A DNA stretch of 64,000 nucleotides from Leidyana gryllorum EB-2025a (Eukaryota > Protista > Apicomplexa): NCBI GenBank assembly GCA_048772705.1, contig JBLWGC010000043.1:248001-312000 (forward strand). Direction: 5' to 3'. Made by a program: the position numbers and the translations under genes. The notes beneath the pieces are model-generated. The model was not told where the DNA came from, did no database searches, and was given only the letters and a program-made list of their open reading frames with translations. Positions 3,001 to 64,000 of this stretch are shown in pieces. How positions within the stretch are numbered: position 1 is the stretch's first letter; every line of letters starts with the position of its first letter.

Positions 3001-6000
3001 ATCACTGTGTATGATGGTGCACATGTTATCGATCCCTGATTCTCTATTCTCTCCCACAGTCCAGCATCTCCTGCTTCGGCTGGCGTCTCGCGTGGAAATG
3101 ATGAGAATCCCCGAGTTGCGACAGTTTGTAACCATCCTCTCCCCTGGAGCAGTGCCTGGCCATTTCGAGACCCTGCTTTCTTTACTGCAGACGGAGGACC
3201 CTTTGAAAGCTTATGCTATTCTCTCCACAGTGGGTACGTCCTTCACGTATCCCAGCAACCACGGAGGCTGGTGCTGTGAGAAAGCACTGAATACCTTCTT
3301 GATTGTGTTACTTGACCTCCGACATCGGTTCCTGTCGCAAAAGTATGAGAATCCGGGGGAGAAGGCCGTCATAAAAGCCGAATGGACCTCTCGGTTGTCA
3401 GAACGACCTGATTTGAACTTTTCTTTGGAGCTATTATTTGATACCGTAGATCGTGCACTATTCGTCCTTGGTTCAACGTTGAAAGTACTTCCCTGGGACA
3501 CCCTACTGGAGCATAGACGCACATCTGATGGAGCTGCTTCTTACAAGTCCAACTTCACTACTGAACGAGTCCCTTTCGCCGATCTGTGGGCCGGGAAAGG
3601 GAACTCGTTGTGTCCCCCGAGTCTGCGCTGGCTCGTTATGGCAAGAGCCATGGATGTCTACAGCCTGGATGAAGTCCGACACACCCTGTCGGAGTGGTTG
3701 ATGCAGCTGCCAGGTGACAAGTTACCAGCAGGATGCCCGGTTTCCCTGCGAGCCGAGACGTTCTCGTTATTGGTTCCGATGGCTTTGAATCACTCCGATC
3801 TATACGAAACGACAGGAATACAGTTTCAAAGCGGATTGGGCTTCGGCAACGCTTCGGTATTGAGCAAAGACAGGGCAATGGCCCGGGCAGTGGTGGTGGC
3901 GCCTCCCACTGCCGCACGATTGGGCTCACAGTCCCGATCTCGACCGGCTCGAGTGAATCTGAAGATCAAGGTACGCCATAAGGCGCTGGCGGGATTGCCG
4001 TCTCAATTGTGGAACATCAACGATATTAGTGACGTTCCAACTCACTCTCTTCCGTTCTATCTTCATGTCAAGATTGGCGCAGGATCGACTCATTTTGTTC
4101 CCCTGTTTCTCCGGCCTTTGGAAATTGGGCCGGATCTCCTCAATGATATGGCTGTCGCTCCCTGCCCCGTGGATCTGACAGCCTCCATTTTCCCATCTTC
4201 ACAACCGCCCGACATCACCCTCGTGCCAGACTGCTCCCCCGCGGCGCGGGCTAAGCTTTTTGCGGTCTCTACATCCTTATCACATTGGCTCGCATCGGAT
4301 TTTCGAAATGGCATTGCGATGACAAGCCCGATAGGCAATTGGGCCAGAGACCAATTAGTCCATCATATTGATAGTACCAGTGAATGGTGCGTAACGCTTA
4401 TCCTCCCCTATCGCTCCACTGGTCTAACCCAATCCTTAGGTACACTGCAGTCGGAGTCCTCCCCGAACCTCTGCGAGACGTTCGGTCATTTACTCCGACA
4501 ACGAAGATCAGATGTTGTTTGGCTATCCACACGCACAGTCAGTACACAATGAACGGTCACGACCCCATGGCCCCTTCCACTGTGCTCTATCTGAATAACT
4601 ATGGTGAACTGAGCAACTCTCCTTCTTGGCAAATAGACACCTCTGGGGTGAGGAGACGGCGCTTGGAAGTCCCCATTTTGTTGTGTGAATTCTCAGGAGC
4701 TCTGCAAGAAATGGAACGAAACGGGCCATCGATATGAGTCACGTTGCGAGATTCAGTTTCCAGACTGCCGTGAGTTTGACTTACCGACAATGTCTCCCCA
4801 CTTAACACCCAACAACAACAGAGTACTCTTATATATGTGTGGCTTCTACTGCGAACCCCGGGTCATTCGATCTCATTGCTATATCCTTCTTATATCGAGC
4901 TGTTTGGCTGGCAAATGAGGGCGAAGAGCAATGGTTGGCTCCTCGGATATTGAAGCTCAAGATGAAAAGGGCTCGTCTTCGAAGGAAATTCAGGTGAGTT
5001 TGAAAGTGGTGGTTTCCACCTGGTCTCACCTCACCTCACTAACTGCTCCCTCCCCTTGGACAGGCGGAGCACTGGCGATTTACAGGGTTGTGGGACTGCT
5101 GCCAGCCCTGACATGTATGTGCAGGTTTTGGATAGACTCAGCAAATATGGAGTGTCTTGTGACCGCCCTCAGCCTTGGTTGCCACCAACTCGCCGATTCT
5201 CTCCCAATTCTAACGGGAGCATTCTCGCGCATCTAACGAAATCTGCAGTTGGACGGGAATTCGTTATCAAAGATCTCCGATGCCTTGTGCGCGAAAAGAC
5301 CCACCTGCTGCAACATCCCGCAATTCTGCGGCGCCTATTCGGCGCGGCTGTTGAATTAGGCGGTGGCTGGGATCCCAAGTGTAAGCCCATACCAACTGCT
5401 TTCATACCATTGCACCTTCGCAGCTCAATGCCTGTCAATGCTGGGTCTGACAGTTGGGCCCTTGGAACGGGGTGCAGATCCAACTACCGAAGTAGCCCTC
5501 TCCTTTCTGCGGGACCCTCGAGACCATTTGGAGAATCACAACAATAGAGCGCCTTCTCCGTCCAAGACACTGTATAAGGCGTCTCCAGAGTTGTCAAACC
5601 CATTTGCCCATATCTCCGTGCCATCGAAATCTTCGCCAGAAGATCTGTTGACAAACTGGAGCGCAGACTCTGTCTGGCGCAAGTTCAAGATCCTGACCGA
5701 ATATCCGCGTACCGCTCTGGAACTCTTCCGTAAATGTATGGATCGAGGGCCGAGTCGACGAGAAGGAAATGACGTTCCCTCCCCCGACAAAGATTCAACG
5801 ACGACGGCGACAATGGAATGTGTTGATGAGATGGCTGTATTTAATCAGTGGGAAGGAAACATTGGACCGTGGCTTTCGCATGTCGCAAGTCAACAAATGG
5901 AGTTTTTGTGCAGCAAGCCGATTGTTCGGGAACTCCGTGTGGAGCTGACTGACTGCTGGGTTCAGAAGCTTGAGTGCGATGCATTCTCCTTCACCGAGGA

Positions 6001-6432
6001 GCATCTGGAGATCGTACGGCTGGTAAGCAGATCGATATGGCGGTAAAAAACACTAGTTGGCTTTAGGTGAGTGAACTGCGTAACAATGTTCTCAAGGGAA
6101 CACGTGGTTTGACTGAGAAACTGAAAGCCGCCACGTAAGTATGTTCTTATTTGGAATGTAGTGTGCAGTCAGAAGCGGAAAGGATCGACTATTTAGCTCC
6201 GTTGAGCTGGCGTGGCGTTGTGTGAAGCTCATTGAGCTCTACCACTACGACCAACAGACAACGTAAGGCTGCGGGTGACATCAGACCACAAGTTTGGCGG
6301 TGCAGGCGGACGATAGTGCAGCTATTAAAAGGCCATAAGTTTGCTCCGGGGACTGTCCGCTCTTCTTTCCATGACCGATGCGCACTTTGGGATACGTTGG
6401 AGCTAGGATGGACAGTTTACAACTCGACCTAG
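1..6432 (+). CDS. Giant uncharacterised multi-exon protein, family paralogue 1 (5'-partial; start lies before the window)
   Basis: ORF pieces at 93-353, 551-2449, 2603-4387, 4440-4700, 5056-6022 and 6067-6432 are joined by GT-AG introns (e.g. 4388-4439, 6023-6066). They carry, in order, the family motifs RHARWLMW, DWRQS..VWLELVRCP, GDVLGLQCCYALARAG, YVINTVGYY, LSPG..GHFE, LRAETFSL, HP.ILRRLFGAAVELGGGWD, FTEEHLEIVRL, SVELAWR and LWDTLELGW. TAG at 6430-6432. Confidence 0.85.
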
Positions 6433-6440
6433 AAAATTAT

Positions 6441-9400
6441 ATGTCAGGCAGAGGGTGGCGGATAGAAAGCCTTGTACTGGGATGTCTGGCACGAGTGGAT
6501 CAAGTTGCCCAAACACCGCAGGACTCAAAAAGCCGAGCTTCCATACAGTCCCTCTGGCGGGCTCTCAGAGCACTGCTCCATGCGTGTGACGCTCCCGGGC
6601 TGGTGCTCTTCCATCTAACATATCGGAGTCAGATCGTGATTCCCGAGCATGTTCTTTTTAGAACCTCCCCATTGGCCCTCGTCTCCTGGCTCTACTTCAC
6701 CTTGCGAGTCAGCGCCGTCCCACTTATGGACGCTGAGCGACAAGTCATCTTACAGTGCCTAGCTAGAGTGTGGTCGCGCTCCTTTATGGGGGCTCTACGC
6801 AACGAGTTGCATACCTTAACACTGTCGTACAGCATGAACACTAGCTTGCAATGCCATTTTGACCAGATCACGAGACCGCTCTGGAGGGAGATTGAAGACG
6901 ATGCGGGCTCCCAAGCCCTTCCGAACCTGAAATGGGGAGATTCCTTAGCAACTGAGTCCCGATTGGAATGCTTGGGTAACACCTCCAGTATCTATTCTTT
7001 TTTGGCTGCGGTGCGAGGAATACTGGCGCTGTATCTAGCTCAGTTGAGCACCCTCATTGGGATCGCTCAAGGTGCTGCTGAGGCTCCAATCAGATCCTCA
7101 CATACCTCCTCCATTTTGGCCCGTGAAGCAAACCTGGTCGCCGCGACGTCCCTGAAAAGCGTCTTGAGACTCGCTCGACTGGTAGCATATCCTTTCATGG
7201 AGCTGACGATCATGGCCAATGGCACGGCAGTACGAATGGCAGATATTGATCATTCAGCGGACGAATTATCCTATGACGAGCTTGACTCCTATCACTCGTG
7301 TGCGCGAGAACCCTTATATCGATCCCAATTCATGCATAGCCGTAGAGCCTCCAACAATCTGCTCAGCTCCACTGAACATCTCGACATGTCGGAGGAAAGT
7401 ACCTCTTGTTCATTTGAGACTCAGTCGACAGACTCTGCGTCAATCCCAGATGAGCGACTTGAGCTCCTCAAGTTCTATCGCCACTATCGCCACGCTCATG
7501 TAACAATATGGGTACTTACCGCCATTTACACCGTAGATTTCGTTAGTATGCTTTCCTCCAACTGCGTGAGGAGAGGAGTCGGCTCGTTGGAACCCGTCGC
7601 TGAGATCGACTCTCCTCGTCACAATGGTGCTCACTCGGCAGGCAAACAGCTGGTGGTGAGTTCCGCCTCTGCCGGCATCAATACACAACAACCCCATAGG
7701 CTTACTGCAAGGACCTGATCTATGATGTTGGGCTCCTGCGACATTGTGTGGCACTACATCACCACACCGACTGTCTCACTTGGTCTTGTGCGACCGAACG
7801 GAATCTTTGTATGCGGGTAAGAACCGTGTCTCAGTGTTTGCGTGATCCGACCAAATATCATATGTGCTCCATTGTACTGCTTACCGCTTTTGTAGATTCG
7901 TCCTCGCTTGGGCGGCCTCATCAGGAACTGTCTTGAGCTTGGTTTCTGCCTAGACGCGCAAATTAGCCCAACTGTCACAGGCTTGTGGCGAAGTCAAATA
8001 CACGCACTCAGCGCTTTTCTATTTCTTGACGACTCTTTAACAACCCTACGACGCGTTCCGTTCAGGTCGATGGACGATGAACTCCGGAAGACTACTGACT
8101 GGCGGCAGTCTGCTGCTGTCTGGTTCGAATTGATCCGGACGCCTGTGTGGTTATCTCACGAACTGCGTGACCAAGTTCCAGGTGAGCTAGAGTGACATAG
8201 ATGGTTGGATTACAAAAGTGGGGCCCAGGACGAGTATCGATCTTGTCCTGATTCATTCCACTACACGTGACATGTCCCATTGATGCCGCAGGATTTCGAG
8301 AATTCGGCGAAGCTATCATGTGCAGTCGATCGGTGCTGACTTTACTGCGACTAGTACGGCTTCTCTTAAGCACCATAAGCGTTTCCTTCGGTTTGCTGGA
8401 GATGCCTTCGAATGTGACGAGTGCTTTTGATTTGCTACGCCGCCGCCTTTGCGGCATCGACAATCCTTTGCCGACTTATCTGACTCTAGGAGATGTCTTT
8501 GGTCTCCAATGTTGCTACGCTATGGCTCGAGCCAAAATACATATAGCCCTCAGAGGTACAGCACTTTTGATCTCGAACTTCGTTTCACTTACTCTGCGGA
8601 CATTTAGACAAGTCGCTGAACCTGGACCTGGCAGACGATGTCGTTTCCTGCCATAAGGGTTTGCGCGCGGTCCAACAGATCACGTGTCGCGTTCAGCGCG
8701 CCTTGCGTTTGAAGGTTGGTGGCAGAGCTTGGCGCTCACGTATCACGAATTTGCCCGAGAAATCCATAACAGGGCACGGAAGAAATGACTACTCTGTACC
8801 GCGTCTGTCGATATTTGTGGTTAACACGAAGGACGAATGGTTGTTGGCCAATCCGCGCAGTCAGTTGACAGCGGCAGTCGAGCCAAGTCTTTATCAGGTG
8901 GCCAGATACTGTCTTCGGCTTGAATTAGAGAGTGCGATCAGTTACATTCAAGAAGGGGCTACATATTATTCGAAGATATGGAAGGTGAGACACAAAATTC
9001 TACAGATGCTCCTCTATTGATGCCTGTCATCCCTCATAGGTACCGAGGCCTGGCTTCACATGTGTCAATGCTTCGATCGCTCAGCGATATCCAGTCAACA
9101 CTATTGGATACTATATGCTTCCGCTGTGCGACTCGAAGTGGGCCCCGGCGGGATTTGTCGCGGGTACGAACTCTCCAGTTTCAGGGGACTCGTCTCAGGT
9201 CTCAAGGACGTACTCGGTGGGAGCGTCCAGTGTGAGTTCGGCGCAGAAACCACACGGCTCCTGGTCGAACGACACTCGGGGAATGGATGTGTTGTCGAAC
9301 GATGTCGTGCTCTGCTCGAACTACTATCTTTATTGGAGCTCTCAGACTTACCACAATTATTCTCATCTTGCCTTCAACATTGGAGCGACACAAATCACGC

Positions 9401-13860: not shown

Positions 13861-16800
13861 ATGGAATGGGGGCACGGAGAGAGTGTGGTGGCCTTGATAG
13901 TCTCCTGCTTGACGGAAATTGACAGCTCACGGCGAAACGCGAATCGCAGATCTGATTCTATTGTGTGGTTATTGAGAACACTGCGCGCTTTGGTTCAAGC
14001 AGTGAGTGTATGTGATCTCTCCAACTTTAAGATATGATCGTAGTCAACGGCGTCTGACATCGTTCTCTTCACCGCTAATTATGGGTCCAAACTGAAAGTC
14101 CCTGAACATGTCTACAGAGCCGACGGGGAGTCAGCGCTGCTATCCTGGCTATTCTACTCCGTACGAGCCCCATTCGTTTTCCGGCCTCCATCCGCCTCGA
14201 AATGGACTGTGGATGTGGAACGACACCTGGCTCTCCAAATACTGGGACGGCTCTGGAGTGCATCGTTCGTGGGCCCATTGACCGCAGTCGTTGACCACAT
14301 AAGCAATGCCTACGACGCCAAGAGCCTCTTATTCTTCGAATTTCAACATCTTATCTCTCCACTAAATGAGCTCCAGTTGGACGCAGAAAGTGCCCTCCGT
14401 TTGTACACTTACATAGCCGCCACTCGAAATTTGGTGGCATTGTACCTGCGACGGCTGAGTCAAAGCGCTCAAGAAGAACAGCGATCGTATGCTCTCTTCG
14501 TCAACCAGTTGCGGAACGATGTCGGTTATGGTTGCACTTTACCTCTGAGGAGCACACCGCAGTCGAGGTCTCAATCGGTGAAACGTGAAGACCCCTCAAA
14601 ATCTTCCTCTCCAAATCTGAGTGCTTTCATGATATACTATGTGCTCAAGTCACTCCACGAGATAGCTCGCATTTCCTCTCTCCCTGCTGCGATGACCGAC
14701 TCGGGGGAGGATATCTCTTCGTCGCCGTCAATGAGTTCCGGTGTCAGTGTGAAGAGGCTGGGAAACTTCCACGCTCACAAACGACATGGACAATTGGCTA
14801 TTTGGACCACATGTGTTCTACTGCTATCCAACTGTTCTGATACACTGCTCGACTCGTGCATCTTCCATGGTCTCGATTCGGGTGTTGCTCTCTCAGAGCA
14901 AGCCAAGTCGCTGAGGGTAAGTAGGAAAGAAGCTGGCTCAAGATCGCACGCACACACTTCAGATGCTGCTGGAGGAGTATGTTTATTCTTTCAACTTGAT
15001 CTCTCAAATTGCCCGATTGCACTATCAAACGAGCGCGTTGAAGTTCTGCTGCAGGATGGGGAATTCGTTGTACTGCTGGGTATGGCCATCGGTCTTATCA
15101 TCAAATGAGACGTTCAGTAGGTCAAACCAAAACTAGGGAATTCCCTCCGGCGGACGGTCGAGCTTGCCATCTTCCTGGATAACGGTGTGATGCACTCCAA
15201 GTTCCCTGGAGTCATCCGGTCACAGATCAACTCTCTGTGTGCCTTCATGTTCATGGACGAAGGCTACAGCCTGTGCAAACGAGTCAAAAGTCGCCCAACT
15301 TGGGACCCCGACGGCTCGATCTCGGATTGGCGACAGTCCACTGCTGTCTGGTTGGAGTTAGTCCGTTCACCGGTGTGGATCGGAAACGAGTTGGACGGAT
15401 TAGTCCCGGGCTTCCGCCGATTGACGCAAGCCATTCTCAGTTGCACCACCTATCTCAGCTTCCTGCGATTGACTCGTTTGACAATGACTACAATGAGCAC
15501 TTCTCTCGGGATGGGCGGGCTGCCTTCATCCACCACCCAAGCGTTCGAGACGCTTCGGCGTCGTCTTCAAAGTGTGAATGAAGTGGAACCTCGACACCTC
15601 GCGCTCGGGGACGCCTTGGGTTTGCAGTGCTGTTATGCTCTTGCGAAGGCCGGCGTGCCAGGCGCTCTGCGTGGTGAGCTTCGCGTCATTAACATCTCGT
15701 CATACCGTCCCCTACATAGAGGTTTCGTACCGGTCCCAACTGACTGCGACTCGTCAGAGTATTGCCTATGTAGCTCTGCGAGCCGTCCAACGGACAGCAC
15801 GATACGGCCTGCGCATAATTAGGGATGGACTCGGAAGTAGGGTTTGGGAAGCCAAGAGGAATGTGGAACCTGACATTAGCATCATTCGGGAACTCGACAC
15901 CAGATTCCCACAATTGCAGCACTTCATCACTCGGGATGCCGAGGAATGGCTGCTGGTCAATCCGCCCGATGCCAACTTGCCCGAAGATATAAGGCCACCA
16001 AGTTTGACCGACGTCGTTGAGTATTGTGCCCGGTTAGAGCTAGAGACAGCCATTGCCATGATAGAAGAAGGTGCTGGGTACTTTGCCAGCGTTTGGAAGG
16101 TAAGCACTCGGATTGATTGAACCCTTTGATCTCAACGCTGTCGGTTGCCCTCTCAGGTACCTCGTCCAAAGTCTGTTGGTGTCAAGTCCACGCGCCATCA
16201 ATTCTATCCAGTCAATACTGCAGGTTATTATTTCTTCCCTCTATGTGATTCTCAATGGGCACCGACCAGCTGTCAAAAACGAATGGTGAAGGAGAGAGAT
16301 GCGATTCAGAGAAGCACTGGCCGTATTTCAGAGTTGGGAGGATCGGAAAGCACACTGGTAAGCCGAGTTAATGAGTTGGAGTTGATCTCATCTTCATTAT
16401 ATTTTCTCAACCAGTCTCCGATACCCCCTCGCGAGATTGCATCTCCCCGGTTATTTGAATTAACCAACTCCGTCAAGTCAGCTGCCAACCATTACGTGTT
16501 ATGGAATGCAGTGACATGGCCGGGCTTGTCCAACATGTCTCACACGTTCGAGAAACTTCGAGTCTCGGACACGATCACGAATTCGGATGCGACCTACTTT
16601 GGCGTAGGACGAGATCCCAGCAAAGAGAGTTGCGAGATGGGAGATTGGTTAGACGGCCAGATGGACTCTTTAAGTATGAGAAGCACCACGACTGCCGAAA
16701 GTCGAGGAGAATCGCGGGACTTCTCACCGTCAGCCCCCAAAGATGAGGGATCAGCATCGGACATTGACAGCAGCTCGTCGGGCTCTTTAGGCCCCTGCGA

Positions 16801-37400: not shown

Positions 37401-40400
37401 GAGAAGAGTACTGCGTGCTCGAAATCCGCGCCCGGTCTCGAGTGACTCTGCTCGGCCCATCCTGACCTCCTCAGGCGGCGATTCATGAATTTCAGACGGA
37501 GGCGGATCAACACAGCAAGAAACCGATTAACTGGGGCTGCTTCCGAGTTGCCCCAACCCCCCTTCTCGGCTGGCACGTACATATAGTCGGTGCCCAGTAT
37601 ACTCAGGATGATACACAAACGGAACGGGTCATTGGATTCGAGCAGCTGTAGCAAGATTTCGAAATGCCCACAGGCCTGACCGGGACTCAATACAACCACC
37701 ATCTGTTTCAAGGTACGAATTGGGAGCAAATCAACATCCCGAGCCATGCGTAAGAGCAACTCGGCCATTTCCTCATTTCTGTTTTGGTGGGTGTGCGGTT
37801 TACGCCTGTTACAAAGCATACCTGGCAGTGAGGGGCGACTGGTTGCTGGCTGCATTACACATATGGAGGATCACCGGTGCATAACGATCCAGCGCGTCCG
37901 CATCATACGTCTGCAAGTCGACCATTCTCTTGATAGAATCCAGCATCCGGTGGAAGACTGTTCGTCCACCTTGAACTATCAGATTCTGTAAGTCGAGTCC
38001 CTCATCAGTGGGCCCAGGATCCGCCGAGATTCCCAAACAGAGCAATATTGACGCCACCAAAGTTGGGTATGAAAAGTTGGCGCCTCCAATAGGAGTATAG
38101 CCCAATCTCGGACAAGTCGGCAGCAGAGGTTGAGGCTGCTCCTCAGGCGAAGCCGAATATCCAAAGTAACTACAGGCATAATGTGTGTGGCCATCCCGTG
38201 GGGACACACCTCAACAAGCTTTTGATGAAGGTCAAAAGGCCTTCGGAACCATATATGTATCCGGGCGCGAGGGCCAGGAAGGTGGCCAGCACCTTCAGGA
38301 TTACTGCCCAGTCCCTAGTGGCACGAATGAGTAGACAAGCCACTCAAATCGATTACAATTACCAATCAGCTTTATCATTATTGAGTGGTTCCCAAATCCA
38401 AAGAGAGGGCGAGCAAGACTGTAGAGCCGGGGCAGCGACTCCAGACGCGGTGATCATCCTTTCCAACGCAGTCGTCAAAACCTCTTTGTAGTCATCTTCC
38501 AAGCCGCTGCTGTGTAGTCGACTCTCCACATAGTGGCGAGTCAGCCCGGTCGACAGGGTGGCCAGCACTGGATGGGGGGCGTGTGACCATGCGCACCGCT
38601 CCCGAACCATCGCGCCACACATCTGAGGCGCACGATGAGCGAGATGTCATCATGCTTACCGAGCGTCGAGACAACTTGGAGCAGACAGCTTGCCAGAAGA
38701 CCCAGAGTTCCCACGGGGAGAGGAATTTGCCATCATCCAAGCTGCGTACGACACGCACAGCCTGCATCCCAGCGTTCGCACCAACGTGCTCTGCGTCGTT
38801 GAGGTCTTCACTTGCTGAGGAACTTTCATCATCTGTCTCGCATGTAGATTCGGAGGCCGGATACTCGCCAGACATGACTGCCAGCGTACTGTTTTGTGAA
38901 GACGGGAACCCCATCACCCAAGATTGGGGGCCTCCGAAAGAGGAGGTGGTCGCAGTGCCCGTCTCCATCAAGATACGCTCTCGTGCGGTTCCTATAGAGG
39001 TGGATTCGTCTTCGGAGAAGCCATCAGTGGTAGGGGCATCGAGTGAATGTCTTCGCGATGTAAGGTCGTCTCCACAGACACTCTGCCTACTGTGTTCCAC
39101 TGCTGTTTGGGTTGTGGGATCCAAGGTCACTTTGCAGACCGCCAGATCGCACCACGTAACATAATGCCATAACAAGTAATATATGAGAGCTTGTTGAACG
39201 GCACTGGATTCCTGCCGGTTCAGTAAGTGGCCAACGTGCGCGTCCCCACCAATCGACGGTCGCATCTTCCCCAGCGTTGCTTGGATGATGTCGAGCCGCG
39301 ATCGATGGAGCCTTCGATTGAATGAAACGGGATTCCACTTTGTATCACACAGCGGGGTAAAGTAGAATCCAATCGTATTGACTGGATATTGAAATTTGCG
39401 CTGAGGCTGCAGTTCACCCGGCGCTGATGAAGTACCGGTTTCCGTCTGAAGATATAAGAATGAGTAAAGTGATGTACTGTGGGATTGATAATCCGGAAGT
39501 AATGGCTGAAAGGGGAAACGGTGCTGATAGGGAGGGGAAGAGGAGAGGAACGTGGAGCATTGAGTCAAATCACAGATGGTCGCTCATCACGAGACGCTCA
39601 TTGAGGAGTTGATGGAACGACTGGTATTGGGGCGAAGCTGCTTTCGCGAGAGTTGTCGCGGGAGTTCTCGCGAGAGTTTTGGCGGGAGTTGTCGCGGGAG
39701 TTCTCGCGAGAGTTTTGGCGGGAGTTGTGGCGAGAGTTTTGGCGGAACTTGTTCCAGACTCTCTTTGGCCACCAGCCCTTCTTTCTCCGGCGCATTTCGG
39801 ACTCGCTCGTCTTCTGTGGCGTCAGAGTCTGCTCCATCGTTCCGGGCAGACTTTCTTGGGCAGACGCATACCGTGAGACCATTTGGGAAGCAGCCGCGCT
39901 GGGGAAGCCACTGTGCTCGACGGATTCAGCGCTGTGAAACACCTCCGACTGGGCTGACGGACCCGAGGATATCGAAACGTTTGGGCGTAAGTGAGCCAAT
40001 GGCGCTCCCATATCGATCCGGCCCCCGCATTCAGGATCGTATCTGTGGTCATAATTGCTGTGGAGCTGAACGTGAGTTTCCACGTTCCCCTCTTCGAACT
40101 CCTCCTGTGCGGGACTCCAACCAGCGCGCGAAACCAAACTTGATGGATCAGACTCCCAATAACAAGGGACACCGACGATCGGTATCATCTCCTCCTCCGT
40201 ATCGTGAGGGGAGTATCTGTAGAAATTGTCGACCGCATAATGACGTTTGGGCTGTTGTTGCTCCAATTGGTATTTCCGCCACACTTCTCTTCGAACTCTT
40301 CCCAGCGCTGTGTCGTCCTCAAATTGCTCGACAGCGAGGAGAGGTGGCGTAGAGCAGCGGGCATGATAGCCGTAATCGGGCACGGCCGCCGCATACACTT

Positions 40401-43400
40401 CCAACTGGCGATGGACTTGCGGGGACCCATAAGCTGCAATGTTGCTCTCGTCCCGCTGCAGCTCTGCGGATGGATACACATCAGATGACGAGCACAATAG
40501 GGGATCATTGCTGCTGGGCAGTTGCGTTGCGGAAGCTTCAAGCTCGCGGTAACTCGGCTGCCGAGGGGTATATTGGCTGGATCTGCTCTCATCGAAAGGC
40601 TCAATATAGTCACTGACCCTCGAAGAAACGTAATCTCTTTGTGACACAGACTTATCCAAGACTGGGTCATCCTGTATTGTCTCTACGGCTGCTTCTGGCA
40701 CTGGAGGCATTGGTACAAACGGCTGGTATATGTCTTTTGCGTGTGCGAGACATCCTTCAAACAGTATGGCCGGCACACTCATGTGTGCCTGTGAGCTCTG
40801 TTGCATAACCGCTTCCTGAATCCGCTTGGCTTTGTCGAGCTGTAGCGGGGGGATCGGAACCTTCGGTTTAGACTGACGATGCAGCTGGTTGCATCTAATG
40901 TTCGCCACGCCCTCGCTGGAAGCGCACGAAGAAGAACTGACACACGTTGGTGTAGGAAGCACGGCATTCTGGGCTGACGGCATCTCGATGGAGGCAACAC
41001 ACTCGCGGGTGTGATGAACTGTAGCTTTAGTGAATCGCCGCTCTGCAGGCTTCTGTGAGATCAACGGGATATTGGAGGGTTGATTTTGGACCGGACGGGT
41101 ATTTTCGTCCGGCGGAGTTTCGCGTATTGGACTGCCCAACTGGTCAGGTTCCTCTGTTGGCCGTTGGAAATCCCTGACCCTGTGCGGGCCGGTGTAGCCG
41201 GTTGGCGCGCCTTGGCCCTGCTGGACGGCCAGTTTGGGCCGAACAAAGAGAGCGTCAACTCCGCCGGTTGACTGATCGCGATTTGGATCATTCGCCCGTG
41301 TTGAGCTCTGGTTCCCCCGAGGGGTACTGATTGGATGGCACAGAGTTGGATAGCAGGAGGCATAGAATAGATTTTCGACCTTGCGGACCAGCGGCGGTGT
41401 CTCGGTCGCACGGAGACAAGCGAGGGTGTCTCTCGGACCTGCGGATTTGGACACAGGGGAGGGTTGGGGACGAGGAGGACTGGCAGATGAGGCTGCGAGC
41501 TCATTCGGGGTTTCACCGCCCTGGGAGCTTAGCCAGTTGAAGCATGAGCCGAGGAAAGAGGTTGGGAATGCATCGTCAGGGGGTGCAAACAGGAAACTAA
41601 GCATCTCTCTGTTCTCACCTTCCAGATCAGATTGTACAAATTCGCACCTTCTTGTATGCGTTGAAGTGTGTATTCACATTCCAAACGGCATACATACATG
41701 ATCAACTCAAACTTGTTCATCCGGCTTTGCCAACGATCCTGACCCTCCGGAGGAGCGGATCTTAACAGCCAATCGTCAGCATCATAGACCAAATAGGTTC
41801 TGAGGTTGGGCACAGCGCTCTGCATTTTACGGGCGAGGGCCAAACTCGACAATTCCGGGAGACTTCCATTCATTCGCAAGCGCCAATTCCGCAATCCCAT
41901 CGTCATATTCTGTATTCTGTAACCGATGGAAGTAATCTTGTGAATCGCTCGCAACCCTGGGCCGATAAAAGGATCGTCCTGACGATGCTCCGCTGGGAGT
42001 TTGGACGAGCGATCTGGGTGGGGCGGGAAGAAAGAGGTCAGTGGAGTGGTTTTGAACGGTGTTTTGTACCTCGTAAAGCCGTCGCGACACCAGCCATGGC
42101 CAGAGTGTGACAGCACTGCAGTCCCAGCACATCGCCTATCATCAAACCGTCAGGGCGGCAGCCGTGCTGGCCTTGCAGACGGCGTCGAGTTCGCTCGAAT
42201 GCATCCCCCATGCCGTGATGGGGCACCACTGGCATTCCGAAAGCTCGATTCACTGTACTGAGAGTGAGACGAATTAGGCGGAGGAACGTTAGAGGGGAAT
42301 TGCATTTGGCGAAGGCTTGTGCGAGTTGTCGTGAAGTCACGAGACTATTTTCGAGTTCAAATGCCAGCCAGGAAGGCGAACCAACCAACTGGAGCCAAAC
42401 CTCCGACGAGTACCGCCAGTCCATTAGCGCCTCCCCGCTTTCCGTGCCTCGAGCTGGCAGGCGTCGAGCTCGAGTCAATGTATCTTCTGCAAAAAGGAAC
42501 GCGCACAATGATCGGATTTGCCCCTTCCACGCTCCCGTTAGGCTTCGAGACACTTGTCTATCAGCGTGAAGTCCTAATTCCATACATCGTCTAATCATTA
42601 TACCCAATCTGGGCCTGATCTTCGCAACAAGAAGGTGTAGCGCGACCGGGCGATCGACGGTAAAGAGCACTCACTATGTCTGCCAGGGCACTCTCAGCGG
42701 CACATAAGGGCGAGAGGCAGCCCATGTGAGCAAATAGGTTTGCGCATCGCGACAGCAAGCGACTGTCGAAGACTTGTGTTCTAATGAGACGCTTTAAGAG
42801 ACTTGGTGTCATACTATTTGAGGCGTCTCACCTTGAATTCTCCCAGCAAGAATGGATGTTTCAATCTCGTGGGTCGAATACTGCTTCCTTGCACGATGGC
42901 AAGATCGCCTACTATTTCAACGAAATCGATAACAGAGAGCACACAAATGGCCCACAGGACAAGCAACCCATGTCTCTGGCAATAGGCAGTACAATGCGCG
43001 GCTTGGAGGACCTGTGATCGCGGTTGATAGCCCCCTTGCAATGTTGGTGGTGCTGAACGTGTTATGCACTTGTAGAAGTGGCCAGCGTGACGGTGGAGAT
43101 TTTGTACAGCCACAGAGATAGATATGGAGTCAGGCTGTCCTGACTCCAGTGTAAAGGATAAATTCGCAGCCGAACCCCTTCTAGACGCGCGTGCGCTGTG
43201 GGCCACAGGAGGGGCAACGGCACTCACTGGATTCTCCCCCTCATCTGGCCGTCGTAGGCCCATATTGGCGTGACGGTAGAATCGAGTCATGGAGAATTTC
43301 AAGATGTGACGAGTGCAACAGAGATATGCGTAGAGCCCGGACAGAACCGCAGGGGGCAGTGATCCCTTGTGACTCAGGAGGGCACTCAACGCCCGCTCAC

Positions 43401-43847
43401 TTTCGTAAAACAAGAGAAATCGGTAATTATAGGACATAGTGAGGGTGTGGATGGCGGCGCACACCCCTCCACCGAAGCCTGTCGACCATACGCGAGCCAG
43501 ACAATGAAGTGCTATCGCTCGGTTGAGGTCGTCGGCGCGGAACATGGCCGCGCGGATCACGCATGTCACCCAGCTCAGGATGCCGAGGTGTGTGGTTCTG
43601 TAGGAGACATTGAATGGGATGACCTTCTGAATGCAGTGTCCATAACGGGCAGTGAAGACGAGCAGACGGTCAGCCGTTGTCTGCCAGAAACTGTGAGATT
43701 CCTTCGGATGCAGCAGCGACAACTCACCGCCTGCAAAAGCAACCGCAATTGCACCAAACAGGGTCGAAGTTCCGTCTCAGTGGCAGCGGAGTACAATAAT
43801 CGGTCCAATTTGATCAGGCAGTTGCATAGTATGGCCTCTGCTACCAT
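34441..43847 (-). CDS. Giant uncharacterised multi-exon protein, family paralogue 4 (contains the 2.17-kb intron)
   Basis: ATG at 43847 (MVAEAILCNCLIKLD). Motifs LARVWS, QRHGLLVLW, DWRYSSEVWLQLVGSP, GDVLGLQCCHTLAMAG, YPVNTIGFYFTPLCD, LSPGQACGHFE, LQAECFSL, HSGVVNRLLGLAVELRGGFD, ELWWRA, LLWDTLELGW. Stop at 34441. Confidence 0.83.
39598..41604 (-). CDS. Nested intron-less 668-aa low-complexity (S/P/Q/E-rich) ORF inside the paralogue-4 intron
   Basis: Uninterrupted ATG (41604) to TGA (39598). No family motifs. Ends with a basic patch RRRKKGWWPKRVWNKFR and NSR[QHED] repeats. Confidence 0.7.
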   Translation of the reverse strand: MLSFLFAPPDDAFPTSFLGSCFNWLSSQGGETPNELAASSASPPRPQPSPVSKSAGPRDTLACLRATETPPLVRKVENLFYASCYPTLCHPISTPRGNQSSTRANDPNRDQSTGGVDALFVRPKLAVQQGQGAPTGYTGPHRVRDFQRPTEEPDQLGSPIRETPPDENTRPVQNQPSNIPLISQKPAERRFTKATVHHTRECVASIEMPSAQNAVLPTPTCVSSSSCASSEGVANIRCNQLHRQSKPKVPIPPLQLDKAKRIQEAVMQQSSQAHMSVPAILFEGCLAHAKDIYQPFVPMPPVPEAAVETIQDDPVLDKSVSQRDYVSSRVSDYIEPFDESRSSQYTPRQPSYRELEASATQLPSSNDPLLCSSSDVYPSAELQRDESNIAAYGSPQVHRQLEVYAAAVPDYGYHARCSTPPLLAVEQFEDDTALGRVRREVWRKYQLEQQQPKRHYAVDNFYRYSPHDTEEEMIPIVGVPCYWESDPSSLVSRAGWSPAQEEFEEGNVETHVQLHSNYDHRYDPECGGRIDMGAPLAHLRPNVSISSGPSAQSEVFHSAESVEHSGFPSAAASQMVSRYASAQESLPGTMEQTLTPQKTSESEMRRRKKGWWPKRVWNKFRQNSRHNSRQNSRENSRDNSRQNSRENSRDNSRESSFAPIPVVPSTPQ
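39648..39743. repeat. Eight 12-bp tandem units with a 36-bp higher-order period, encoding (NSR[Q/H/E/D])x8 on -
   Basis: Units gagagttgtcgc, gggagttctcgc, gagagttttggc, gggagttgtcgc, gggagttctcgc, gagagttttggc, gggagttgtggc, gagagttttggc. Confidence 0.92.
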
Positions 43848-57600: not shown

Positions 57601-60600
57601 GGGGAGAGTTTGATGACGAGTGATGAGGGGGTCGACTCAGCCATCGGAGGAGCACCCGTGCGAGAGAAAGGCGATGTTGTGGGAGCATTCCAAGAGACAA
57701 ACGTCCATGTGTCCGAGCTGATCAACATGTTGGAGCTCACCTTCAAAGATCAACAGCTGGAAGCCGACTATCAGGTCCACCGCCGGCAACACATCACGTG
57801 AGTTGGGAAAGAATGTTGGGAGAAATTCAATTGACAGACAATACCGCTTATCCTATCGTCTAAGCTTCCTCTTCCTGTGTGTTGTTACCATCATGATGGT
57901 CATCCAAGAAATGTCGAGCTCTGCAGGCGCTTCAATTTCGGTCAACAAGGCCATTATTGGCTTCATACCATATTTGATCTCTCTGACGCTGTATGTTTCG
58001 AGCCATTACGACTTTCTCTTCATCAACTACTTTGATGTACTCTTGGGAAGCCTCGTTCTGGCAATTGCCTTTTTTCAACTCCTCTCCGATACTCTCCTCT
58101 TCAAAGACGGGGTCTCCAGCACCGCCATCTACAGTGTACTGATCTTCATTTTCTTCCGCATCCCCTTCCTCCACGCCGTCTGCTATAATACCATACACTT
58201 CATTGCCTTTACATTGCGCTACGCCTTCACTGTCACCATCTCAGAAAGCATGAAAGAGACAGACAGTAGCTCCTTGCCGCCCACTGGCGCTTCTTTGACC
58301 TCGGCTGTGTCGCGCTATTTCCCCGATATGTTGGAGGCTGTGTCACTGAGCAAGTTGACCACCTATCTGCCCGTGCTCCTTGGCATTGAAGCTTTCACTG
58401 GATTTGCCGCCTATCGCTTGGAATACAATCGCAGAAAAGCTTTCTTGCTCGACTATCAAGTCGAGAAAACACGCAAGCGTCAAACGGAAATACTCCACAC
58501 TATGCTCCCCGCATTTGTGGTCGAACATATGCTCAATGGACCCTTCAACAAGAACGGAGTCCCCGTCGGTCTCAAAGCGGAAGATCGTGGTACTGTCTCT
58601 GTGGTGTTCTGTGATGTCTACGACTTCCAAAATATTGTCGCCTCCGTTGCTCCAACCCATCTTGTCAAAGTATTGGACAGCCTCTTCCTATGTTTCGACA
58701 AATGCGCTGAAAGGTTCGGATGCACCAAGATTGAAACTGTCTTCGAGACTTATCTGGCTGCCGCGGGGATCAAGTTGGAAGGCAGTGGTACGGGTGGGGG
58801 CACCAGCGAACGTTCATGTGACGTAGCCACGCCCAGCGAGAATGCATTTGACGCATTGTGTATGGCTTTGATTATGCTGCGCTTCTCTCGTCATGTCACC
58901 TACGTTGTTACTGAACAAACTGTGGGACCTTCGGAGGTGCGCAGCGTTGGGGGCTTCTCCTCAGACGATGGCAGCAGTGATACCGTTACTGCAGCAGCAG
59001 CAGCTGCGGCCACGGCCATGGGCGAGGGCAATCCGCGGACATCCCGAAGCAGCGAAGCCAAGCATCGTAAAGTGAAGCGTATCCGGGTAAAGATTGGTAT
59101 ACACAGTGGCCGCGTTATCAGTGGCGTCGTTGGGGCTAAGAAGCCGCAATACGCATTGTTCGGTGACACAGTCAATACTGCTAGTCGTATGAAAACAACC
59201 GGCAAACCCGATCACATTCATGTCTCCTCGGCCACACACGATTTAGTGAAATCGGATTCTTGCTTGATATGGGAGGAGCGGCTGATCGAAGTCAAGGGCA
59301 AAGGTCTCATGACTACGTTTCTGCTCATCCGAGTGGAGCTCCCGCAAGATCATCCGGGCGTCCCTCGCCATCAACCGAATCCCCAACCAGGTCCCTTCAT
59401 GCCCCCTCGATACTCCAAGTCCAATCTTCTGCCAGTCAGAGACAACACAGATGTGATCTCGAATAATCGATCTGTCGAAAAGGCTCCCTCGGGCTCTCGA
59501 GTGGTCGGAACAAATATAACCAGTTTCGAAACTCGTCGAAGTGGAGCTGTAACACCTTCCACTTTGTTCGGCGGCACTGTTCCGAACACGCCGACTCACA
59601 TTGGGGCGGCGCTGGCCAACAACAGCATGGCTCAAGCTGATCCATTTGGAGATGTGGAAGTTGCTGACGAAGGAGACCGAACGAGTCCCCACCAGTTTCG
59701 GCTTGGTCTGGAAGGCCCAATTGCTACGGGTCCCACCCGTGTTGAGGCTCTATGGTCGAGGTTTCAGCGTCAATATAGTCGAGATCTGCGTGCCGGGAGC
59801 TCGGCCGGACCACACCCGGCTATGGAGCGATCATTCGTGCATGACCCTGAGAAACCAGGCGAACGAATGCAGCATAAGGGTAGTCAGGCTGACTCCGTAG
59901 TTGAGGAAACAGTGTTTGTCGCCTGTATGCGTCATATAAAGCGCCAGAGGAACGCTCGGCGGCAGCATCACCAAGCACATCCCCCAGCGAATGTAGCGTC
60001 GCACACTGATTCCATTCGGAATCATCAGATCAACGCTGACGTGCACTGGACTAGTCTGACTTTCAAAGACAAGTACTTAGAAGATCGCTACAAATCCCAT
60101 TATTATTCTAATCCAAGCAACATCAACAATATCGAACAAGCGATTATTATCTTCTTAGCTACCTATGTGATCCAGACACTTGTATTTGTGGCCATACCTC
60201 GATATGAATCTATGTGGATCTTCCAGGCCGAAGCCGCTGTGACTTGGACAGTTCGATCTATATTCACAATCACCAGCTTCATCCTATGGTTAATGCTGCA
60301 CTTCCGGGACCGGACGCCTCTATCGGTATGTTTACACACACAATCGTGAAGTGATAATTGTTAGCAGGCAGGACGTTTTGGAACGAAATGGGTTGTGTTC
60401 TTTGCGAATTTCACCTTCATGACCTCTGCGTGTGCCGTTATGCTGGAGAGCAGCTGGAGCTTGGACTTTCCGGAGGACATTAAGCCCTTTTGGTTGCATG
60501 TCGACACCTTGCAGCTCTTCTTCTTCATAACCATCCTGCATCATAACAGCGGTCTGTTGGTGCAACACGTGGTTTTGGTCAATATGGTGGTACTAGCTGT

Positions 60601-61765: not shown

Positions 61766-64000
61766 TCAATTACTGGGGGGGATGAAGGGGGGAATATCGG
61801 CAGCGGGTCTCCTCTTGGCAATGTCACGCAAATCTGCAAACATCTCCACCAGTTGGGACAATGCCATCTTCTCCTGGTTTTTGGGATCCTCACGTTTCCG
61901 GACCATCACACAGCGTTCCTCTGCGACGAGAAGATTTAAATATGAATTAGTCAGTGTGCTTACCTTCTTCTTGGGCGCCCACAACGAGAATGTAATTCCA
62001 TTGGTGGACCTGAGCTTCTCTGATCTTCTTGTTGATGGTGTTGTTACTGGCGTCCACCTCAGCGTCGAATCCGCGGTCCCGCAACACTCGGGTGACATAC
62101 TGAGCGTATGGGAGATTCTTCTCGGAGATGGGACACACGATCGCTTGACGCGGACTCAGCCAGAAGGGCAGTCGACCACCAGTGTGTTCCAGAATGACAG
62201 CCGACATTCTCTCAATGGAGCCCAGGATGGCTCTGTGGACCATAACGGGACGTCCAAAGCCCGGCTTGAGCTCAGTCTCAAGAGAGCCGTCAACGTTGCG
62301 CAATTGCTGTTGCTGTTGCTGCTGCTCGGAGCCTTGTGGGTGATCGGCCCGCTTGCACTCCTCGTTGGCCTGGACAGCGGTGGATGTACCGTCCTCGTTC
62401 GACTTGTATTGCAGGTCGAAACGCAAGGGTAGCTGGAAGTCGAGTTGAATGGTACCGCATTGATGCTGGCGTTCCAAGGCATCCATCAATTTGATATCAA
62501 TCTTGGGTCCGTAGAAAGCACCGTCGCCCTTGTTGAGCTTCCAAGGCATTCCACACTCATTCAGAGAGTTCTTCAGCTGGGTCTCCGCTTTCTCCCACAA
62601 CTCAACTGTTCCGAGAGCCTTTTTGGGGCGGGTGCTGAGATGGAGTTCGAAGGTGAAGCCGAACAATTTGTAGATGAAGAAGAGGAAATCCAAAGCAGCC
62701 GATACCTCGGCTTCGACTTGGTCCATACGGCAGAAGATGTGAGCGTCATCCTGTTGGAATCGGCGGACTCGAGTCAGTCCGCTCAGACTTCCGCTGAACT
62801 CATTGCGATGCAATACTCCGAAATCGGCCATGCGGATTGGGAGTTGTCGGTATGAGGGAGCCATATGTTTGAACATAACACAGTGGCCGGGGCAGTTCAT
62901 TGGTTTGAGACCCCAATCTTTTCCTTCGACGTCCAGAAGGAACATACAGTCTTTGTAGTTCTGTAAGTGTCCGGAGACGCGGAAGATGTCGCAGGAGAAC
63001 AGATTGGGCGAGTGCACTTCGGAGAATCCACGAGCAGCGTATTCAGCCTAAGATGGGAGGAGGAGATGAGGGGCAAATTGGAGACTACGATCGAAATCTT
63101 TGATTGCGATGATCAATCGCCTCAATTGATCGCATTAAATGTTCACTCACCCGCATCAGTTCGACCAATTTGTTATAAACTTTCGCCCCCTTCGGCAGCC
63201 AGAATGCCGAGCCTGCGGCGAAGGCTGGCTCGAAGAAGAACAGGTCGAGTTGTTGACCTAAGAGGCGATGGTCACGTTTCTTGGCTTCTTCTACTAAACG
63301 GATGTGTTCTTTCATCAACTTGGCGTCGGGGAAGGTGATGCCGTAGACTCGCTGGAGACTGTCGCCTTCACAATTGCCCAACCAGTAGGCTGAAGAGTGT
63401 TTCTCCACTTGGAAGGCTTTGATGTAATTGAGGTTGGGGATATGGGGTCCCATACAAAGATCAACGAAGGGTCCACAGCGATATACCGAAGTTTTGCCAC
63501 CTTCGGGTACTTTAGCGCTGATCAGTGCCACTTTGAAGGGGTTGTCTTGAAACATTATGAGTGCCTCTTCCTTGGTGACTTCCAATCTACAAAACGGAAG
63601 ATCTTGACCGTGGAACTCGGCAGCCTTCTTTTTCATGTCCTCGTAATTATCTTGGGTGATGGAGGGGCGGTCACCCAAGTAGAAGTCGTAGTAGAAACCT
63701 TTTTGTAGGGCGGGGCCGATTGTGACCTGAGCACCGAATAACTGCTCAGCCACGAGACCCAACAAGTGGCCACTAGAGTGCCAGAAGACGCCTTTGGCCT
63801 CCTTGTCGTCAAACTTGAGGAACGCCAATTTGCAACTGCTGGGAAGGGGACGAGTCATATCCCATAATTGGTATTCTTTGTCCTCGTCCTCATCGTCCGC
63901 ACCGTCATCCGAGTAACCTTCGACATCCTCGGTATTGGCACACTGGGTAGCGCTCTGCACCACACTCTTGTCGGCCCACACAACTCGCGCAACTATTGAG
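61766..64000 (-). CDS. TARS: Threonyl-tRNA synthetase (5'-partial)
   Basis: [108 protein letters not shown]. Short introns. Confidence 0.96.

Follow-up and report, generated by a model that had tools for sequence, protein, structure and literature searches.

A 668-codon orphan reading frame fills an enlarged family intron and may be a gene nested on the same strand as its host

The window (the whole stretch of 64,000 nucleotides analysed here) belongs to a compact, apicomplexan-like genome of 15.5 Mb and holds members of a six-copy orphan gene family, one of which, the minus-strand paralogue 4, has most of one intron taken up by a second reading frame, ORF668. Our preferred reading of the sequence, to which we assign a probability of about 0.4, is that ORF668 is a same-strand gene nested in the intron of paralogue 4. 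A single-copy, intronless orphan coding sequence would then lie inside an intron characteristic of the family and would account for its growth from about 55 nt to 2,173 nt. To make the host, 41618 would be spliced to 39446 across the insert, and ORF668 would be a separate unit with its own ATG at 41604 and a transcript whose start lies in the final tens of bases of the host exon, yielding a serine/proline-rich, disordered protein of 668 residues with a strongly basic, RS-like C-terminal helix of NSR repeats.

The introns that follow the 'WK' motif in this family are GT..AG introns in phase 0, and the positions initially annotated for them in paralogues 2, 3 and 5 were reproduced in all three cases (Table 1). 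Paralogue 1, in the window, and paralogue 0, upstream of it, have no intron at this site and read straight through, so that the intron is kept in four of the six copies. In paralogue 4, the alignment to the family picks up again immediately past 39446, the acceptor, so that the gap is 2,173 nt. The donor of this intron (AAG/GTGAGA at 41618) scores 11.5 bits, within a training range of 6.3-13.1, and the acceptor (...ATATCTTCAG at 39446), which is in frame with the host, reaches 9.6 bits. The initial annotation had called it the longest intron in the window, and rightly so: the 33 ORF-bridging introns harvested there measure only 35-103 nt with a median of 49 nt, making the paralogue 4 intron about 44 times as long as the median. 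ORF668 lies wholly between this donor and this acceptor and occupies 92% of the intron, and the flanking exons are colinear with the five paralogues.

Table 1. Features discussed in the text. Positions refer to the window unless a contig is given.
Feature	Position	Strand	Length	Remarks
Probable first exon, paralogue 4	43728..43847	(-)		Read from sequence and frames; donor 43727 and acceptor 43681 harvested
Host exon ending ...NLIWK	41619..42013	(-)		Aligned with the 'WK' exons in paralogues 0, 1, 2, 3 and 5
Giant phase-0 intron, paralogue 4	39446..41618	(-)	2,173 nt	Position shared with the intron in paralogues 2, 3 and 5 (55-57 nt there)
Candidate proximal intron, acceptor CTCCCAG/GGC	41521..41618	(-)	98 nt	Would join host in frame to ORF668 residue 29 onward
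ORF668, intronless, ATG to TGA	39598..41604	(-)	668 codons	Predicted disordered orphan
Tandem repeat encoding NSRxNSR array	39642..39744	(-)		Basic C-terminus of ORF668; TRF; repeat family D1
Pyrimidine-rich tail, ORF668 stop to host acceptor	39446..39597	(-)	152 nt	Py 0.68
Host downstream exon, starts TETGTSS...	38660..39445	(-)	262 codons	Alignment with five paralogues
Last host exon, conserved C-terminal block and stop codon	38359..38622	(-)		After 37-nt intron 38659-38623
'WK' intron, paralogue 2	8985-9039		55 nt	
'WK' intron, paralogue 3	16100-16156		57 nt	
'WK' intron, paralogue 5	49162-49108		55 nt	
SERCA giant intron	G000:C159, L021 3258-5208		1,951 nt	Conserved sequence on both sides

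ORF668 itself is present as first described, a complete frame whose ATG lies 14 nt past the donor G at 41618, and the 73 nt upstream of this ATG contain no other. Given the base composition, open frames of at least 691 codons are expected by chance about 1e-6 times in the whole 15.5-Mb genome. The codon score of ORF668 (+0.09 bits per codon) is the best of the six frames, is on a par with the SERCA and bestrophin exons (0.10-0.12) and exceeds zero in every block of 60 codons. By its length and codon usage, ORF668 is a genuine coding sequence. Note that conservation cannot vouch for it, because relatives are absent from all searches: it has no Pfam family, a word search returned no match, none was found among 1.84 billion protein representatives, the Atlas gave a best score of 0.79 and no lead, and a look-up of the exact product found nothing. 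Searches were run exon by exon, no spliced or joined protein being used, and frames were checked on short translated junction windows. At both the DNA and the protein level ORF668 is single-copy in the genome. Its product is predicted to be disordered; the predicted fold has a mean pLDDT of 39, too poor for a fold search, and the language-model recognition value is low.

Might the frame nonetheless be non-functional, either an assembly artefact or a silent remnant of coding DNA that was inserted into the intron and is tolerated there? The missing relatives, the lack of any domain, the poor pLDDT and the low recognition value would all fit, and an analogous ORF in a SERCA intron of the same genome, described below, has a codon score near zero. 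However, a stop-free frame of 668 codons does not last without selection unless it is very young, codon usage is native over the full length, and the contig is continuous, with the insert placed exactly within the intron and no repeats at its borders. We therefore consider a non-functional ORF668 very improbable.

Other features of the locus suit a nested gene. No donor-like site of at least 6 bits occurs in ORF668, compared with 0.94 per kb in reference coding sequence. Gene spacers on the minus strand can be as short as 7 nt, so that a start 14 nt past a host exon fits this genome; the probable ATG of paralogue 4, at 43847, itself comes 7 nt after the stop codon that ends the gene before it on this strand. 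A nested gene on the host's strand must, on the other hand, end inside the host intron, which would compete with host read-through, and three acceptor-like sites of at least 8 bits within ORF668 (41053, 40217 and 40058) could act as decoys and hinder the long splice.

Judged from its sequence, the host looks intact: both splice sites of the giant intron are strong and stand at homologous positions, and the acceptor is in frame. The 5' boundary of the exon ending in ...NLIWK is fixed by a homology-supported 56-nt intron (42069-42014). Beyond the giant intron, the C-terminal half has 262 + 87 open codons (349 in total), can be aligned to the paralogues from its first residues, contains a 37-nt intron with good splice sites and has diverged no further than the N-terminal half has (22-29% versus 23-29%). 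The first exon of this C-terminal half bears the conserved YPVNTIGFYFTPLCDTKW motif and has no in-frame ATG until 39262; there is no ATG in the C-terminal half upstream of the conserved YPVNTIGFYFTPLC motif. Since a conserved motif stands upstream of the first ATG, the C-terminal half can be translated only if it is spliced to an upstream exon.

Evidence that this genome splices introns of such a size comes from a SERCA gene, where a giant intron interrupts homology that extends up to residue 497 of SERCA1 and resumes at residue 591. Homology on both sides of 1,951 nt implies that introns of about 2 kb can be filled by a gene and still be spliced in this genome, and this independent control thus supports long splicing. 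The SERCA intron is nearly filled by a single-copy orphan ORF of 673 codons, which runs antisense, overlaps the host donor and has no Pfam family; its P/R/G-rich product has a pI of 11.9 and a biased composition of low hydrophobicity, suggesting disorder. The two cases are alike in that one orphan ORF of about 670 codons almost fills an intron of about 2 kb whose neighbours measure about 50 nt. They differ in that the SERCA ORF is antisense and overlaps its host donor, is P/R/G-rich, scores near zero for codon usage and is unrelated in sequence to ORF668. A P-type ATPase gene beside an Asp/Lys/Asn-tRNA synthetase gene on contig C104 proved not to be a nested arrangement, the ATPase ending before the synthetase gene.

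These results bear on a further reading, in which the host is broken: all it would still make is an N-terminal fragment that continues past WK for 29 read-through codons (stop at 41531-41529), ORF668 would be an independent gene, and the C-terminal half would be an undecayed relic. This reading is invited by the length of the intron, 44 times the local median, and by the decoy acceptors it contains, as well as by five other paralogues that could cover the function and by tight same-strand gene chains, in which consecutive separate genes are natural. We nevertheless think it unlikely. The C-terminal half retains 349 open codons, a well-formed intron, conserved motifs and ordinary divergence, the donor and acceptor of the giant intron are still strong, and the SERCA control shows introns of about 2 kb to be spliced in the same organism. 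Moreover, nothing marks the insertion of ORF668 as recent, because it has no source copy in the genome and uses native codons. Among the options offered by the initial annotation, a nested gene and an alternative splice into the ORF thus stay alive, whereas a host split into two genes is weakened by the lack of an ATG before YPVNTIGFYFTPLC, by the unremarkable divergence and by strong splice sites at homologous positions.

The alternative splice is the chief rival of the nested gene, and somewhat less likely. Here the donor at 41618 would alternate between the distal acceptor at 39446, giving the family protein, and a proximal acceptor at 41521, giving a fusion of host and ORF668, with the ATG at 41604 being incidental. 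The fusion isoform would consist of a host N-terminal part of about 700 residues followed by ORF668 residues 29-668, ending at the ORF stop, and would need no separate promoter. The in-frame acceptor proposed for this splice was located where annotated; it enters the ORF668 frame, and the resulting 98-nt intron is within the observed range of 35-103 nt. The 84 nt from the ATG to this acceptor have a pyrimidine fraction of 0.667, which is the second highest in ORF668 and in the top 1.2% of coding windows, contain CTGAC and TTCAAC as branch-like motifs, and include 69 nt free of AG before the first AGs, a stretch seen in 2% of coding windows. Such a pyrimidine-rich, largely AG-free segment is what the interior of a 98-nt intron would look like, which favours the fusion. 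Against this, the acceptor scores 2.5 bits by PWM, in the lower quartile of real acceptors, for which leave-one-out scoring gives a median of 5.7 and a minimum of 0.3. The ORF frame also remains open for 51 codons upstream of 41521 and includes an in-frame ATG, for which we estimate a chance of about 0.1-0.3, and the first 28 codons of ORF668 score +0.13 bits per codon in frame. Finally, an AG at 41528 lies 7 nt upstream, and the frame that results from using it stops after four codons. A second acceptor that enters the ORF668 frame, at 41053, would give an intron of 566 nt and scores 10.0 bits.

Going one step further, the proximal acceptor might open an ordinary internal exon (41520-39622, 633 codons, phase 0-0), in which case a 98-nt intron would be followed by another from 39621 to 39524, 39506 or 39446 and the host would carry a disordered insert of 633 residues in its linker between WK and YPVNT. 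The 152-nt tail downstream of ORF668 does contain these three acceptors, all of them in frame with a donor at 39621, and is strongly pyrimidine-rich; non-consensus donors, moreover, exist in the genome (GTACAA in paralogue 4 and GTAATG in SERCA). Yet the internal donor near the ORF end that the initial annotation had allowed for found no support: the sole in-frame GTs there are CCA/GTCGTT (-8.2 bits) and GTTCCA (-10.3 bits). Note that the donor PWM was trained on GTRAG donors only, and scores were therefore also compared with the proven GTACAA and GTAATG donors, which at -2.1 and +0.3 bits lie far above both candidates. The candidates have C or T at +3, where every supported donor here has a purine. 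Nor can a single indel merge ORF668 with the downstream frame, because that frame has its last stop (39584) only downstream of the ORF stop (39600), and the linker measures about 16 residues in every other paralogue. An internal exon is hence a most improbable reading, and we judge it, like the split host, less likely than either a nested gene or a fusion isoform.

Where might ORF668 have come from? Marks of a transposon or retrogene were sought and not found: there are no border repeats, no further copies elsewhere and no parent gene, and no A-run follows the stop codon. The C-terminal extension of paralogue 1 was rejected as a source, as was the SERCA-intron ORF. Identity as a mobile-intron ORF was likewise rejected, with no endonuclease, reverse transcriptase or maturase domain in ORF668 and no match to an Rfam intron model.

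ORF668 is best compared with the same-strand nested genes of Drosophila, 72.5% of which are single-exon, with an intronless, donor-free profile (Lee and Chang 2013, PMC3814207). Host genes in Drosophila have long introns, with a median total of 12,183 nt, and most nested genes there (71%) are antisense (PMC3814207). ORF668 resembles the same-strand cases in being a complete, single-exon unit within one host intron and in lacking donor-like sites. It differs in that its target was a short intron (about 55 nt, with a genome median of 49 nt), in that it fills 92% of the enlarged intron from a start 14 nt past the donor, and in being an orphan. For the fusion, the closer parallels are alternative last exons with intronic polyadenylation, as in the immunoglobulin mu secreted/membrane switch and calcitonin/CGRP, both metazoan and experimentally shown. 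In paralogue 4, too, one donor could choose between a proximal in-frame terminal block with a stop and the distal canonical C-terminus; the candidate proximal acceptor here is weak by PWM. Mobile introns also carry ORFs, namely the homing endonucleases of group I and the reverse transcriptase/maturases of group II. ORF668 similarly occupies most of an intron, but the intron is spliceosomal (GT..AG), and the ORF is single-copy and without the corresponding domains.

Nested genes are thought to build up where long introns provide large, nearly neutral targets. The SERCA and paralogue 4 cases raise the idea, which we put forward as doubtful, of a small class of 'shell introns' in this genome: ordinary introns of 50 nt, each of which would have captured a single orphan gene of about 670 codons, or been the place where it arose, with little else of the intron left. 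SERCA would be the antisense case and paralogue 4 the sense case, the latter perhaps dual-use, since its own ATG 14 nt past the donor and the in-frame proximal acceptor might supply both a free disordered protein and a fusion to the host N-terminus, while the canonical host would still need the 2.2-kb splice. Should the nested ORFs prove to be expressed, genes can be gained in tiny introns, whether inserted there or born there, and such gain is tolerated even under strong compaction. The same-strand case offers a natural setting in which to test how the 3'-end machinery and a short-intron spliceosome face a gene inside a gene. As for annotation, automated gene prediction would probably yield either a fusion of the host N-terminus with ORF668 or a split host, and each of these models may be wrong.

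The host family is lineage-specific and all-helical. Relatives were found neither by word search with the uninterrupted paralogue 1 ORF as query, nor among the named clusters of the Atlas, nor in a metagenome contig scan with the conserved middle domain; the predicted fold of the host core (mean pLDDT 46.7) is too poor for a fold search. An Rfam scan of the stretch gave a single match, a miRNA at the chance level of 25 bits against a gathering score of 110, a tRNA scan gave nothing credible, and the CACGTG palindrome is absent from 38-44 kb of the window. Within ORF668, TRF resolves the NSRxNSR array into repeats of period 12 (8.6 copies) and period 36 (2.7 copies), and residues 601-650 have a net charge of +10, with a helix predicted at residues 614-652.

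Among the members of an orphan six-copy gene family, paralogues 2, 3 and 5 carry, directly after the 'WK' that ends the preceding exon, a phase-0 GT..AG intron of 55, 57 and 55 nt, respectively, as the initial annotation had described; in paralogues 0 and 1 the same site is read through without an intron. Paralogue 4 retains the family donor (AAG/GTGAGA, G at 41618), and its next homologous exon lies 2,173 nt further on, paralogue homology restarting immediately past the acceptor at 39446 with an exon that begins TETGTSS... and leads into the conserved YPVNTIGFYFTPLCDTKW motif. For comparison, the 33 introns that bridge open reading frames in the window range from 35 to 103 nt, with a median of 49. 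The proposed 668-codon frame (ORF668) also stood up: its ATG lies 14 nt past the donor on the same strand, its TGA is at 39598, and it fills 92% of the gap. Searches were run exon by exon, and translation across junctions was confined to short windows, to check frames.

Coordinates of the genes and regions considered (unprefixed positions refer to the window; L019, L020 and L021 are local stretches of other contigs with their own numbering)
Feature	Position	Strand	Remarks
Paralogue 4	38359-43847	minus	
Guanylate cyclase catalytic domain	57803-60349	+	PF00211, E 4e-41; inside long gene
Threonyl-tRNA synthetase	61947-63017	-	Best solved relative PDB 7l3o
SERCA intron region	L021 3127-5208 = G000:C159:203627-205708		Intron homology-proven
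Class II Asp/Lys/Asn-tRNA synthetase gene	L019 4432-6072 (G000:C104)	+	
P-type Ca-ATPase-like gene	L019 7136-9885 (G000:C104)	-	Tail-to-tail with tRNA synthetase gene
440-aa open frame	L020 2873-4192 (G000:C213)	-	No Pfam family; strongly coding, codon score 0.15
Bestrophin open frame	L020 4197-5855 (G000:C213)	+	

Given its base composition, the whole genome would be expected to contain by chance about 1e-6 open frames as long as this one. The codon score of ORF668, +0.09 bits/codon, is the best among the six frames, is positive in all 11 of its 60-codon blocks and equals that of conserved SERCA and bestrophin exons from the same genome (0.10-0.12). We consider it improbable that the frame is a silent relic or an artefact. 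Protein and DNA searches find it in single copy in its own genome; it belongs to no Pfam family, and neither the word search, nor a scan of 1.84 billion representatives of some 15 billion proteins, nor the Atlas yielded a relative. The product would be serine/proline-rich and hydrophilic (GRAVY -0.79) and is predicted to be disordered (mean pLDDT 39) except for a short helix at residues 433-449 and a long one at 614-652. The latter falls within a block of charge +10 (residues 601-650) containing a W/K/R patch together with an NSRxNSR array, the array being encoded by a 12/36-nt tandem repeat.

Is the host still a functional gene? Beyond the giant intron it continues for 262 plus 87 open codons, separated by a 37-nt intron with good sites, and identity to the paralogues is 22-29% in this part compared to 23-29% in the N-terminal region. 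At 11.5 bits, donor 41618 is in the upper part of the range spanned by the training donors; acceptor 39446 scores 9.6 bits. Moreover, the first in-frame ATG of the downstream part (39262) lies 3' of the conserved motif, so that the motif can be translated only if its exon is spliced to upstream sequence, and 41618 is the sole strong donor within reach. As far as sequence can tell, the intact downstream part argues either that the 2,173-nt intron is still spliced productively or that the insertion is very recent. The insert bears no marks of recency: its codon usage is native, no source copy exists and its internal repeats have partly diverged. A search of the insert for border repeats, a target-site duplication or a poly(A) remnant found none, nor did scans reveal a tRNA or a credible Rfam hit in it. 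That paralogue 4 has been broken by an insertion is a scenario we regard as unlikely, since the downstream part is open and has diverged as paralogues do, and the donor and acceptor of the giant intron are strong.

Might ORF668 simply be a large internal exon of the host? This would require a donor at its 3' end, where the only in-frame GTs are GTCGTT at 39621 (-8.2 bits) and GTTCCA at 39618 (-10.3 bits). Note that the donor matrix was trained on GTRAG donors only; however, two homology-proven non-consensus donors scored for comparison, both with A at +3, fare better (GTACAA of the 42069-42014 intron of paralogue 4, -2.1 bits; GTAATG of the SERCA gene, +0.3 bits). Nor can the frames be merged by a single indel, and we judge this explanation very improbable indeed.

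A precedent for splicing at this scale comes from contig C159, where SERCA1 residues 201-497 are matched by one exon and residues 591-836 by another further on. The exon ending ...HENFVR stops at L021 3257, donor GTAATG follows at 3258, and the exon FEQQMTFLGVTGLMDPPRPEV begins past ...TCGCAG at 5208. Sequence is colinear with SERCA over this junction; the intron it spans is 1,951 nt long, whereas neighbouring introns have about 50 nt. An antisense ATG frame of 673 codons nearly fills the intron, its end overlapping the host exon and donor. It is P/R/G-rich (pI 11.9), single copy and has a codon score near 0; it belongs to no Pfam family, a word search found nothing related outside this genome, and it does not resemble ORF668. 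SERCA is taken to be essential. Together with paralogue 4, this case suggests that introns of about 2 kb filled by a gene occur more than once in the genome and should need to be spliced out.

The same architecture elsewhere in the genome is one reason to read ORF668 as a putative gene nested in the paralogue 4 intron on the same strand, to which we assign a probability of roughly 0.40. A second is that it is devoid of donor-like sites, as are same-strand nested genes in Drosophila, whose profile is a lack of such sites (PMC3814207). Furthermore, same-strand genes here are packed down to 7 nt apart, so that a start 14 nt past a host exon is not odd. A less likely but still conceivable alternative is a fusion isoform, in which 41618 is spliced to the acceptor at 41521 and the host N-terminus is thereby joined to ORF668. 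That acceptor is indeed in frame, as initially noted, and its candidate 98-nt intron falls inside the observed length range; a 69-nt AG-free stretch precedes the first AGs (2% of coding windows), and the 84 nt between the ATG and this acceptor rank among the top 1.2% of coding windows for pyrimidine content. However, the acceptor reaches only 2.5 bits, the reading frame of ORF668 is open over 51 codons, ATG included, on its 5' side, and the first 28 codons of ORF668 score as coding. The nested gene and the fusion isoform could both be true at once. An acceptor-like site of 10.0 bits is also present within ORF668 at 41053 on the minus strand (GATCTCACAG/AAG), in the ORF frame; a splice from 41618 to this site would join the host N-terminus to residues 185-668.

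As a putative nested gene, the paralogue 4/ORF668 locus adds a new case to the known class of intron-nested genes, and the feature itself is real. What is unusual is the setting: a tightly packed genome of tiny introns, and a nested gene that is same-strand, orphan and intron-filling.

Five copies of the host family lie within the window and the sixth about 7 kb upstream; all six share a single contig, in a genome of 15.5 Mb. They extend over window 527-51375 and positions 5597-8991 of a local stretch (L011), in two arrays of opposite orientation. The paralogues are roughly 1,000-1,300 aa in size and differ in intron presence. No Pfam domain was found in them, and word search, Atlas and metagenome scan returned no relatives outside their own genome; the predicted fold is all-helical at low confidence (mean pLDDT 46.7, shallow-alignment model). 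Paralogue 4 has a 56-nt intron at 42014-42069 (minus strand) with the non-consensus donor GTACAA. Alignment with paralogues 1, 3 and 5 confirms the junction (...AGVATALR/DRSSKL...); the counterpart donor in paralogue 3 is GTGAGC, and paralogue 1 is intronless there. Upstream, just 7 nt separate the TAG of the preceding same-strand gene (43857-43855) from the probable paralogue 4 ATG (43847). Promoters must therefore be located within the genes upstream, unless transcripts are multigenic.

Elsewhere, a tRNA synthetase gene on contig C104 was considered as a gene nested in an ATPase and rejected, the C-terminus of the ATPase ending near L019 7136. On contig C213, a 440-aa frame adjoins the start of the bestrophin frame on the opposite strand, only 4 nt away. 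Further genes in the window encode a guanylate cyclase, an adenylate kinase and a threonyl-tRNA synthetase; as a set they hint at a compact alveolate, probably related to apicomplexans. The long gene with the cyclase domain was initially read, from its sequence alone, as a fusion to a flippase-like module. The threonyl-tRNA synthetase matches PDB 7l3o, which we take to be a Cryptosporidium enzyme, with 500 bits, compared to 401 for the next match.
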